Shown: piece by piece, positions 45,744-49,970 of the stretch | Layout: every line of letters starts with the position of its first letter | Numbering within the stretch: the first letter of the stretch is position 1 | Origin: Hydrolagus colliei | Lineage: Eukaryota | NCBI GenBank assembly: GCA_035084275.1 | Contig: CM068762.1 | Location: 11,842,001-11,906,000, forward strand | DNA: 64,000 bases | Direction of reading: 5' to 3' | Program-made: the position numbers and the translations under genes | Notes under the pieces: generated by a model | What the model was told of the DNA's origin: nothing | What the model saw: only the letters and a program-made list of their open reading frames with translations | Database searches by the model: none

Positions 45744-45932
45744 TTACAAAAGACAACAGTCCTTTAGGTTTTCTTTAATGATGATATCAGTCACAGCGTC
45801 AAACACAAACTTCACGTTGTTTGTATCGGTGGCGCACGTCATGTGTGTAGATTTCCTTCACGTCCTTTCGCATGTTGAGCTCCAGAAACTGCAACTTGAT
45901 GTAACCCCTGGTATCTTCATAAGTGTTAGGAC
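45744..45932 (-). pseudogene. GNAT2: GNAT2 pseudo-exon 8
   Basis: [30 protein letters not shown], then a 2-nt (CA) deletion, then [32 protein letters not shown]; 189 nt instead of 191. Confidence 0.9.
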
Positions 45933-47429
45933 CTGGGGGGTTAAAGCAGAAAGACTGGGCAAGAGCTCTCTGGGACACAATCCATGCATGAGGGGCCCCT
46001 ACATATATATATATATATATATATATATATATATACACATATACACACACATATAATAATAAATTTATATATATTTCAATGCATGACTGTTTGTGGGGAT
46101 GCTGCTGTGTGCAATTGGCTGCCGCGTTTCACCTGTGACTGTACAGTCAATTCACTTTACTGTATATTCTGTGAAGCGCTTTGAGACGTCGATGAGATGG
46201 GAAAAAGCCGCCATATCAAATGCAATTATTATTATAATAAATGCAAGTTTGTGTTGTTAATCATGTCAATCCAGACGTGATTTTTTTCATTAATTAAACT
46301 GTGTTATGTGTCAGTGTGAGCGCAGGTTGTCAACCGGGGAAAATCACACGGACGAAATCCACACATTGGATTTTCGCTTCAGAAAGTGTCTGTGTTATTT
46401 TACCCCTTCACTGCTATTCATCGTGTGAGCAAAAATATTCTATATACAGTCCTGTGTGTGTATGTGTATATATATATATATAATATATATAGACACAGGT
46501 AGACTCACTTAACATGGCTTCAGTCAACGTTGTTTCGTTATTACGTCACTGATAAATATTCATTTAACGTTGCAACTTTCGCTATCGCCAGCGAGTGGAA
46601 ACAACTACTATGGGTAGCGTAGGCGTACATAGACGCTAAACTACCAGCCAAGTGCGCACAGGGGTGGTTTGTATCCCACAACCAGTCGTGGATTGAGTGG
46701 CCAAATTATCATTGGAAGCACCCACTCACTCACTAACTGACAAGCTTCATGCTGCTTGTCTCCAGCTAGTACCAATTTACCCCATGAAGACTTTGGCTCG
46801 CAGGGTTGGTCGAAGCCCTAACGAGCAGTGGTGATTATGTTGGGAGGAAACATTTCTTTTTGCTTGCCAACCTCTCCGATCCTTGGTCTGTTACTGAAAT
46901 GCTCAGAAGAGTATTCAGCTAAATACATATTCAGAGCCAAACACAGCTTTACATTAATTGTCCGCTGAACAGACAGACGCCTAAGCATAGTTTTGTCCAG
47001 CTGGCTCGCTGATTAAACTGCAGCGCAGTCTGAGTCCTTGCAACACAGTAAGGAAGCAGTCTGGATCTGCAAGTTGTTAAACGCACTCGCTCTTTAAGCT
47101 CATTGTTGCTTTAAAGGGAACTCGAACGCAGCGAATATCAACGTCACGCGAGATGAAACGCCCATCGGTTGAGGACAGATTGGTGTAGGAACTCAAAACT
47201 ACCTCCAGCAGGTAAAACTTATTTTTGTCTCACTGTGATCTTCACCTCTCTCTCTCTCGCTCTCTCTCTCTGACTCACTCTTTCATTGCGTTGTTCAGTG
47301 TATGCATGACTGAATGAGCGGAGACAGGGCTCAGGAACACAGTAACTGCTTCACTCTGGGCCATTACTCGGTGCTTAATTTGCTGTAACGTTTCCCATTC
47401 CTATTTCCGTGCCGACAAAATAAGATAAC

Positions 47430-47725
47430 CACAATCCTTGCACTCGATATAGCGGCTTTCCAACATCTTATCGTACGTCTCAAAGCGCTTCACAGAATAT
47501 ACTGTAAAGTGAATTGACTGTATATTTGTGGGCGAAACGCGGCAGCCAATTGCGCACAGCAACGTCCCCCACAAACAGTCGCGGATTAAAAATTACCAAT
47601 TTTGTTATTGTGGTTTTTTTGAACGGATTATTATTAGGTGTCTGTGTGTGTGTGTGTGTGGGGGGGGGGGTAAGGAAACTTGCCCAAGGTTTTGCCCTGA
47701 TCTGCCTGGATTGGAACCGGCCTTC
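47430..47725 (-). mobile_element. Deu-domain SINE within the GNAT2 pseudogene
   Basis: Antisense tail, core ACGCGGCAGCCAATTGCGCACAGC, partial head. Confidence 0.8.
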
Positions 47726-49036
47726 GTATTGTGATTATATTCAGTGAAGGCAGTTGGACCGAATCGTTCAATTGTTTTTTTGGGGCGAGAAACTCCCCAG
47801 CGGTGAGTTGAGAGAAAGAGAGAGAGAGAGCAACTCGTCTTCTGTGAGAGCCAGTGTCTCGGACAGTTCAGGGGCTCAGTGGTAGCGGCAGAGAACTGCC
47901 TCTGCCTCGCGCCATCAACAAAACGCGGGCAATCTGTGGCACAATCTGAGACCTTGCGGGCTGCTTCTTGACGTTTAAGCAACAGGCAAATCGCGCGACT
48001 TTCCACCGTGAGTTGAGACTGAGGAGAGCACAGCTCCTAACTACAAAGCCGACCTGAGGTCGGGCATTCTCTCTGCTCGCTCCGTCTCGGCGCTCGCGAG
48101 GCAGATTCGTTGCGATAACTTGTGGGCCGCCCACAGCTCCACAAGTGGCGGTATCCGAACAACCCCCTCCCCCCCCCCCCCCCCCCCCACACTCCCCACC
48201 CACACTCCCCACCCACACATCTCCCGCTCAGCTGCAAAGTGTGACAGAAATCATCAGGAAAACCGCAGAGCTTTCTGTCTGCAGCGGATACGGGGTTTTT
48301 TGCTGCAAACCCACGTTTGTTTGATGGTAGATACGCACGAAAAGGAAAGGCCCCCCCCCACACACACACACGTCTGTCTGTGTGGCTGCCACATTGGCTT
48401 ACCACAAATGATTCAAGCCGATGGCTTTTACTGTCTACTCTCTGAAGCGGTTTCAAGGTGTCTCGATGACTCGATAAAGGCGCCGTGTCAAGTGCAAGGC
48501 TTATTATCATTATTATTATTATGATTAATATTAATACGGTTGAAATGTACGCAAAGCACGCTCAGAAAGAAAGGTCTTCGGCTGGACTTTAAATGTGGGG
48601 AGGTGGATATTATTTTGGGTGGGGTGGGGAGGGGGGTGAGGGGGGGTGACGCTGGGATCGAGTTCAAAAGATCGGGCGCTGGATGGCTTACATTAATAAT
48701 GTAATAATACTGGCATTTAATAATAATAATAATAGCATTTTTATATGGCGCTTTTCACACCTTCTAGACGTCTCAAAACACTTCATAAAAGTTACTGTAA
48801 AGTGAATTGATTGTATATATCTGGGCAAAACGCGGCAGCCAATCGCGCACAGCAGCGTCGTCCCCCGTGGCTTGAAAATGACCGATTTATTACTGCTTTG
48901 CTTTTTTTTGTTGTTGGACGGATTATTATTATTATTATTATTATTATTAGCCGAGCGTGCGGAGTAAGGAAAGTTGCCCAGGGGGGTTTTGCTGACTGGA
49001 CCTGACTGGATTCGAAACACAAGTCGCAAGTCTTAC

Positions 49037-49135
49037 TATGAGGCCCACAGCATCTTCATCAGGTCCACCAATTCCTTGGGCATCGGTTCCTTCATCGACG
49101 GGAGTCTGCAGGTTAAACAGCTGTCTGCCGGCATC
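49037..49135 (-). pseudogene. GNAT2: GNAT2 pseudo-exon 4
   Basis: ag|DAGRQLFNLQTPVDEGT(+1)MPKELVDLMKMLW-[60 nt lost]-ASY|gtaag; 99 nt = 158 - 60 + 1. Confidence 0.85.
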
Positions 49136-49537
49136 CTACCAAATCACAAGCAACAATAATCCCCGCGTTCGATATAGAGTCTCATCGTGTCTTCGGAGAA
49201 AGTCTCACAACACAGAATGTCATCTAAAGTCGTTTTGACTGTATTTCGTGGGCGAAACGTGCCCGCCGATTGCACACAGCGCTCAGCGATGTCCCGTAAA
49301 ACAGTCGTGGAGCGAGTGGCCCTGGAGGGATTACTACTTCAGGAAAAGCCAGCCCGCCAATCGACTGACCGGGGTTCCTACCAGGCAAACGGAGGAGCGT
49401 GCGGAGTGAGGAAACTTGCCGAAGGTTTCCCCCTGCCCAGGAAATAAAACCCCGCGTCCTCTCGTGCGCGAGGCGAGGGCGAGGCCTCTGACCTCTGCTA
49501 GAGGAGTCACCACGCGCTAAAGGCTTTCGAAGCTCAC

Positions 49538-49659
49538 CCCACGTCATCGATCCCGAAGACCGTTCACGGCTCTGACGATGGCCAGGACGGACTGCAGGAC
49601 GTTGCCGGTAACGGCGGATAGCAACCCTAGACATTCCTCCTTCGAGTAGCCGTTCTATC
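49538..49659 (-). pseudogene. GNAT2: GNAT2 pseudo-exon 3
   Basis: NGYSKEECLGLLSAVTGNVLQSVLAIVRAVNGL(frameshift)GIDD|gtgag; shortened to ~122 nt. Confidence 0.82.
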
Positions 49660-49744
49660 CTCCGAGAAACCACAGAGTATTTCAATGCATCATTTCCTCC
49701 CCAAAGTCTATTCGTTGGATGGCTTGCTTTGTGTTTTGTGCTCT

Positions 49745-49759
49745 GGCGCCCTCTGGTGT
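49745..49759 (-). promoter_or_regulatory. CTCF-like motif
   Basis: Minus strand ACACCAGAGGGCGCC, close to the CTCF core CCACCAGAGGGCGC; motif match only. Confidence 0.45.
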
Positions 49760-49926
49760 AAAGTGGATACATAACACTCTCATTCACCTGTTTAATAATC
49801 CTTATTTAATTGATGTAGAGCTTGATATAGCGCTTTTTCACGTCTTGTAGACTATGTCTCAAAGCGCTTCACTGAGAGAAGTCGGTTGTTGACATACAGA
49901 GAGACGCGTAAATAAATGAAACTCAC

Positions 49927-49970
49927 ATTCATTTGCTTGACGATGGTGCTCTTTCCCGATTCACCAGCGC
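49927..49970 (-). pseudogene. GNAT2: GNAT2 pseudo-exon 2
   Basis: ag|[14 protein letters not shown](K) with an extra T before GTGAGT, 44 nt instead of 43. Confidence 0.88.

Follow-up and report, generated by a model that had tools for sequence, protein, structure and literature searches.

The present study analyzes a degraded G-protein gene in a stretch of DNA from the holocephalan Hydrolagus colliei, referred to here as the window, which is the whole of the 64,000 nucleotides between positions 11,842,001 and 11,906,000 of contig CM068762.1 (assembly GCA_035084275.1, forward strand). The window is without any N and contains on its plus strand an intact GNAI3 (23658-39593; eight coding exons, 354 amino acids) and, beginning 6.15 kb past the GNAI3 stop codon, four ordered minus-strand pieces of a second G-alpha gene at 49970-49927, 49659-49511, 49135-49037 and 45932-45744. 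This region is, with high probability, the orthologous and non-processed pseudogene of GNAT2, which encodes cone transducin alpha, at its ancestral place tail-to-tail with GNAI3; both the identity of the gene and its inactivation are supported by synteny, phylogeny and gene structure, all as read from genomic sequence. An initial annotation of this DNA had placed four GNAT2 exon remnants in order on the minus strand from 45744 to 49970, and all four were recovered there, in the sequence itself and in alignment with the exons of the elephant shark Callorhinchus milii. The same annotation had described a GNAT2 pseudogene neighbouring GNAI3 tail-to-tail, a description on which synteny, the tree and the retained introns now agree, and had observed that the open reading frame (ORF) list shows only part of exon 8, which is so: the sole ORF listed is the 32-amino-acid tail of that exon.

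The reference for comparison was the intact GNAT2-GNAI3 locus of C. milii (GCA_018977255.1, MU249850.1:1794934-1827590, 32.7 kb; GNAT2 protein XP_007897668.1), where GNAT2 has eight exons and is complete and open, its exons translating to the full protein. Human and bovine G-alpha queries were used for exon finding only, and the G-alpha tests used database sequences. Searching the window by tblastn with G-alpha queries recovered exon 8 at E 1e-23 to 1e-26, exon 3 at 2e-7 and exon 2 at 9e-4. At the nucleotide level (blastn) the C. milii locus and the window form one collinear chain that takes in exons, introns, nearly all of the intergenic DNA and GNAI3. Within GNAT2 this chain links, in the numbering of the C. 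milii locus and then of the window, a piece of intron 1 with exon 2 (15639-15835, 50272-49877), exon 3 with intron 3 and exon 4 (17199-17903, 49696-49043; E 1e-65), intron 6 (20636-21369, 47420-46674), intron 7 (22072-22209, 46437-46306) and exon 8 (22408-22695, 45993-45711; E 1e-78). Splice sites stand in orthologous positions, namely the acceptor AG of exons 2, 3, 4 and 8 and the donors of exons 2 and 4, and fragments of introns 1, 3, 4, 6 and 7 are orthologous to those of C. milii. On the minus strand these include the last orthologous piece of intron 1 (50199-50272, 89% identical to C. milii), an intron 4 remnant (48540-48860) made up of a short interspersed element (SINE) body shared with C. 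milii together with unique sequence, the intron 6 remnant (46674-47420; 792 aligned columns, 79% identical excluding gaps), and the intron 7 remnant (46306-46437), which belongs to the same blastn chain. Because introns were kept, the region is not a processed copy or retrocopy. The tail-to-tail arrangement of GNAT2 and GNAI3 is common to the window and C. milii, with similar spacing, and the DNA between the two genes (39594-45743) is mostly alignable at approximately 84-89% identity excluding gaps.

Phylogenetic analysis likewise placed the remnants with GNAT2. A maximum-likelihood tree was built from 41 functional G-alpha i/t proteins and the 133 remnant residues that can still be placed, with the pieces kept separate and no read-through. 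In this tree the remnants were sister to C. milii GNAT2 (98/90), within chondrichthyan GNAT2 (100/99) and within the GNAT2 clade as a whole (99/95), apart from GNAT1, GNAT3 and GNAI, while the other G-alpha gene of the window fell within the GNAI3 clade (99/92). A grouping of the exons with GNAI or GNAO had been named in the initial annotation as an outcome that would speak against it; the remnants fell inside the GNAT2 clade. The end branch leading to the remnants was 0.20, six times longer than the 0.034 of C. milii GNAT2, which is the closest GNAT2 to the remnants and is 83% identical to them over the 133 placeable residues. A search of the PDB with the exon 8 tail gave transducin-alpha (1TAD) as the best match (E 6.5e-14), at 52.6 bits for transducin vs 43.7 bits for Gi. 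The same 32-residue tail was the only one of the short pieces to match a G-alpha family in Pfam (PF00503), at a weak 17.8 bits that lies below the cutoff, as would be expected of a fragment.

All four of the remaining exons carry a frameshift, and those numbered 3 and 4 contain stop codons. Pseudo-exon 2, which holds the P-loop (49927-49970, minus strand, as are all the pseudo-exons), is 44 nt long vs 43, with an extra T immediately 5′ of the GTGAGT donor, bearing out the single added nucleotide first reported there; its acceptor AG and donor GT are present. Relative to C. milii it differs by three substitutions, all silent, of which two lie within the 13 whole codons scored and the third, read by eye, falls in the Gly codon split over the boundary of exons 1 and 2. 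Pseudo-exon 3 (49511-49659) has an 8-nt deletion at its 5′ end plus a +1 insertion, so that the frame reading NGYSKEEC meets TGA at 49546-49544; an independent TCA>TGA substitution occurs at 49536-49534, and some 14 extra nt are found near the 3′ end, before the orthologous donor. This exon had been described as shortened and frameshifted, and the frameshift and the 5′ shortening by 8 nt stand, but overall it is longer, at 149 nt to the orthologous donor vs 142, and becomes shorter only if GTGAGC at 49536 is taken as the donor. Pseudo-exon 4 (49037-49135; 99 nt vs 158) shows single-base changes of -1, +1 and +1, a 60-nt deletion, and then TAG and TAA stops at 49039-49034, with a donor-like GTAAG retained at its end and the head of a SINE immediately after; the gain of one nucleotide originally described is thus a net value, and the 60 missing nt are confirmed in the alignment with C. 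milii. Pseudo-exon 8 (45744-45932; 189 nt vs 191) retains the original TAA stop but has lost 2 nt between 45848 and 45847, and its C-terminus has changed from CGLF to CCLL through Gly352Cys at 45755-45753 and Phe354Leu at 45749-45747, the deletion and the replacement both being as first noted and confirmed by alignment. The columns of M88V, A299T and G352C in the remnants are invariant in 41/41 functional G-alpha i/t sequences, and that of F354L is invariant in 33/33 transducins, so that the predicted receptor-contacting C-terminus is mutated at residues invariant in functional relatives.

The other half of the gene appears to be absent. No match to exons 1, 5, 6 and 7 was obtained on the minus strand of the window by tblastn (E<=10, word size 2), and Smith-Waterman alignment of the C. 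milii versions of these exons to both strands of the window gave scores at the level of shuffled controls. One candidate for exon 6 at 47504-47460 scored 19 vs a null maximum of 16 and was rejected, as it sits in the conserved core of a SINE. The interval expected to hold the rest of intron 4, exon 5, intron 5 and exon 6 (47421-48539, minus strand) contains only SINE copies and G-rich low-complexity DNA, and the expected position of exon 7 (46438-46673, minus strand) measures 236 bp vs 702 bp in C. milii, with no exon remnant. It is exons 5-7 that specify the GTPase core, DVGGQ switch II motif included. Judged from its sequence, the GNAT2 locus could not give rise to a G-alpha protein, because exon 1 with the promoter region is gone or moved, exons 5-7 are deleted and the remaining exons are disabled.

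Upstream of exon 2 the locus has been altered in two further ways. A lineage-specific SINE of 194 bp (50005-50198, minus strand), with a tRNA-Val-like head at 50116-50192, has been inserted 34 nt 5′ of the acceptor of exon 2; the corresponding site in C. milii is empty, locus positions 15712 and 15714 there being contiguous. In addition, unique similarity to C. milii ends at 50272, approximately 300 bp upstream of exon 2, with only repeat matches beyond. The same-strand neighbour upstream of GNAT2, both in C. milii and in the sawfish Pristis, is a PF15799 (CCD48) domain gene. The window yielded no sign of it, the best tblastx matches of the 10 kb upstream of C. milii GNAT2 all being SINE, and in its place a gene for a PTPN22-like tyrosine phosphatase, beginning at 55826 on the opposite strand, stands head-to-head with the GNAT2 remnant; the exons of this phosphatase had no counterpart in the three loci fetched. 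The simplest reading of the changed neighbourhood (50273-55825), suggested by these observations, would be a deletion or inversion with its breakpoint in GNAT2 intron 1.

One SINE family, whose copies have a tRNA-like head and a conserved core that includes GTGAAGCGCTTTGAGACG, is very abundant across the window and also fills the C. milii locus; example copies besides the insertion at 50005-50198 lie at 47416-47633, 48718-48860, 46076-46240 and 39839-40022, and there are at least seven fragments of the family inside the GNAT2 remnant. Just upstream of the point where intron 1 similarity ends is an ORF of 168 amino acids (50717-51223, plus strand) without a Pfam match, which resembles the C-terminal part of a CR1/L2-type long interspersed element (LINE) protein. 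Minisatellites occur between the GNAT2 remnant and the phosphatase gene, at 51633-51981 (45-47-bp unit, approximately 7.5 copies), 54073-54227 (29-bp unit, 5.3 copies) and 54656-55158 (G-rich 30-bp unit, 16.6 copies, local GC content 0.57). The phosphatase gene itself (55826-62770, plus strand) has at least ten open exons, with Pfam Y_phosphatase matches above cutoff. Its scores were slightly nearer PTPN22 than PTPN12, and the label PTPN22-like derives entirely from this comparison. The exon of its catalytic WPD loop (60768-60902, plus strand) is otherwise well conserved and open but reads W-A-D-H-D-V-P, with Ala for the usual Pro, which may be a feature of the lineage, a polymorphism or an error.

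Patterns of substitution bear on when the gene was lost. Between the window and C. milii, GNAI3 exons 4-8 are 95.4% identical, with a non-synonymous divergence (dN) of 0.005, a synonymous divergence (dS) of 0.23 and a ratio of the two (omega) of 0.021, and the GNAT2 remnants have dN 0.097, dS 0.64 and omega 0.15. Identity to C. milii in non-coding DNA, introns and intergenic sequence together, is approximately 79-89% excluding gaps, which is much too low for a second species of Callorhinchus and much too high for an elasmobranch, and so points to another holocephalan family, a chimaerid or rhinochimaerid. Two observations on rates may be recorded here: with gaps left out, about 11-21% of positions in the alignable non-coding DNA are mismatched, or roughly 0.12-0.25 after Jukes-Cantor correction, and dS is much higher in the GNAT2 remnants than in GNAI3 for the same pair of species. 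When GNAT2 changes were polarised with the Heterodontus and Pristis genes, 18 synonymous and 14 non-synonymous changes (n=32) fell on the window lineage, for an omega of 0.18, and 7 and 4 respectively on the lineage of C. milii; intact genes over the same codons have omega of 0.03-0.10. From these counts, evolution in the window lineage would be two to three times as fast as in C. milii. Sorted by codon position, changes on the window lineage are distributed 11:5:22 (58% third), vs 69-79% third in intact genes, which on these small numbers points to a mixed history. A simple mixture of two patterns attributes some 14 substitutions in 460 nt, approximately 0.03 per site, to a neutral phase, which is about a sixth to a third of the neutral divergence of the window lineage. 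Small indels in the remnants number approximately 9-10 per 460 nt or so. The safe statement from these sequence patterns is that selection would have maintained GNAT2 over the greater part of the interval since Callorhinchidae split off, an event that one paper dates at approximately 187 million years (PMC12952989). As a rough estimate, decay would have lasted some tens of millions of years and would fall after that split. Because the gene appears to have been kept by selection long after the split, its loss in the window lineage would be independent of losses in elasmobranchs, a group in which many species retain GNAT2 intact.

Several points weigh against this account and should be set beside it. 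The dating signals disagree, in that an omega of 0.18 translates into approximately 10-15% of the branch being neutral, vs approximately 25-35% by the codon-position mixture, and the number of small indels exceeds what either estimate predicts. The end of exon 4 may be read as truncation by a SINE instead of a clean 60-nt deletion, alternatives that are not separable. Finally, the data are one 64-kb window of genomic DNA, leaving room for an intact GNAT2 elsewhere.

Cone opsins signal to PDE6C through GNAT2, without which normal cone responses are abolished, as in human achromatopsia type 4 and the cpfl3 mouse. In the most likely history, selection on cone signalling would have relaxed in a dim-light lineage, and neutral decay would then have followed by small indels, insertion of the SINE and large deletions; the rearrangement or deletion with its breakpoint in intron 1 was possibly among the inactivating events. 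It is plausible that GNAT2 is unitary in this genome, with no intact copy elsewhere, and plausible also, by analogy with other species, that this species has lost cone vision and has a rod-only retina. Such a retina would be consistent with the silver chimaera, which lacks the Rh2 and LWS opsins that C. milii keeps (PMC12952989). A more elaborate version, doubtful when all its parts are taken together, is that the death of GNAT2 dates back just tens of millions of years, to well after the Callorhinchidae split, and was independent of skates and squaliforms, that the trigger was the intron 1 rearrangement that replaced the upstream neighbour, and that rods or cone-derived cells with another transducin may serve bright light, as suspected in skates. 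If it were true, nature would have run the experiment of rebuilding a retina without cone transducin a third, independent time, in chimaeras.

The rod-only interpretation has to be weighed against the possibility that GNAT2 is dead while cone-type photoreception is kept, with cone-like cells, or rods of cone-like range, using GNAT1 or a GNAT3-like paralogue. Chondrichthyans do retain a third transducin paralogue that grouped with GNAT3 in the tree, and a recent preprint describes skate rods as taking on some cone-like properties (bioRxiv 10.1101/2025.07.30.667746). However, the window holds no direct evidence for retained cone-type photoreception, the chondrichthyans published with a decayed gnat2 have lost other cone genes as well, and a chimaerid without both cone opsins has been described (PMC12952989), so that this possibility appears quite unlikely. 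It is very unlikely, in turn, that the loss is non-unitary, GNAT2 having been duplicated or relocated so that an intact copy elsewhere left the copy beside GNAI3 free to decay. The rearranged upstream neighbourhood, with a PTPN22-like gene instead of the PF15799 gene of C. milii and Pristis, would fit such a move, as would the absence of exon 1 from the window, in that part of the gene could have moved, but the remnant lies at the ancestral syntenic position with orthologous introns. Moreover, each species examined in the protein collection has one GNAT2 protein, or isoforms from a single contig, and proteins named "GNAT2-like" belong to the GNAT3 clade. The collection is also without a GNAT2 from any holocephalan other than Callorhinchus, a weak argument as such species may be unannotated.

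GNAI3 served in these analyses both as the synteny anchor and as a local control for the quality of the assembly. Its exons (23658-23775, 33174-33216, 34194-34335, 34822-34979, 35135-35263, 36786-36915, 38014-38167 and 39403-39593) are of canonical size, with AG/GT splice sites, and encode an uninterrupted protein ending in KECGLY, with no indel. That GNAT2 is intact in the animal, and that the lesions are errors of sequencing or assembly (long-read indels, collapse or misjoin), is exceedingly improbable because, although several lesions are single-base indels typical of unpolished long-read assemblies and one chimaera assembly was built from PacBio continuous long reads (CLR; PMC12952989), GNAI3 is flawless over eight exons only 6 kb away and the lesions are unlike assembly errors: most small indels lie outside homopolymer runs (alignments read by eye), errors of this kind do not produce length changes of 8, approximately 14 and 60 nt, the loss of four exons, a stop created by substitution or replacements at invariant residues, and the protein branch of the remnant is six times that of C. 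milii.

Elsewhere in the window, an inverted repeat (671-1820 and 10993-12142) has arms of 1150 nt that are 99% complementary, lie 9.2 kb apart and contain near-identical ORFs on opposite strands. The repeat may reflect either a recent duplication in inverted orientation or a fault of the assembly. Upstream of GNAI3 there are two immunoglobulin-domain exons (13238-14364, minus strand), one V-set (E 8e-13) and one Ig_3-like, which we take to resemble CD300/pIgR-like receptors.

The preferred reading, an orthologous GNAT2 pseudogene in a lineage that plausibly lost cone vision, brings a holocephalan into the set of cartilaginous fishes (Greenland shark and skates) already known to have lost cone phototransduction independently, and goes together with the cone opsin loss described in a chimaerid. 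Loss of GNAT2 in a holocephalan appears to be unreported, a search of a literature library having found no paper naming both Hydrolagus and GNAT2, but this kind of loss is already known elsewhere. The locus would be of value mainly as a third independent loss among chondrichthyans and because its sharply delimited lesions could help to place the disappearance of cones in time across the chimaeras. The loss of 2 nt from exon 8, the missing 60 nt of exon 4, the SINE upstream of exon 2 and the breakpoint in intron 1 are usable as shared-derived markers in Chimaeridae and Rhinochimaeridae, and could test whether cones were lost once or several times as chimaeras entered deep water. Annotators should record the locus as a pseudogene and keep it separate from GNAI3.

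Comparison with known systems begins with intact genes, which are found in C. milii, Heterodontus, Pristis, Stegostoma, Rhincodon, Mobula, Narcine, Hypanus and others, the introns of elasmobranch GNAT2 being several times longer than those of C. milii and the window. C. milii GNAT2 shares with the window copy orthology, the eight-exon structure, the tail-to-tail position beside GNAI3 and alignable introns and intergenic DNA, but is complete, whereas the window copy is without exons 1, 5, 6 and 7, is frameshifted in the exons that remain and has another upstream neighbour. Among mammals, GNAT2 has been inactivated in the marsupial mole and a golden mole (PMC10671557), where deletion of exon 1, frameshifting indels and stops likewise accumulated under relaxed selection on vision, but these are subterranean animals with degenerate eyes, and AMPD2 is the upstream neighbour there. 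In the Greenland shark, Somniosus microcephalus, gnat2 is a pseudogene, as are rh2, pde6c, cnga3 and cngb3 (PMC12770505); compared at the level of the gene, this is likewise a cone transducin pseudogenised in a deep-sea chondrichthyan relying on rod vision, but in an elasmobranch, and therefore independently, many other elasmobranchs keeping GNAT2 intact. In the little skate, Leucoraja erinacea, whose retina is rod-only, a gnat2 remnant was found by synteny-guided tBLASTN with the elephant-shark protein, and conserved coding sequence is similarly broken by stops (bioRxiv 10.1101/2025.07.30.667746); the skate is a batoid, again with an independent loss, and C. milii entered that study only as the intact holocephalan reference. 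Finally, the silver chimaera, Chimaera phantasma, has lost the Rh2 and LWS cone opsins (PMC12952989) and is, like the species studied here, a non-callorhinchid deep-water holocephalan without cone-pathway genes that are present in C. milii, although the paper concerns opsins and makes no mention of GNAT2, transducin or phototransduction.

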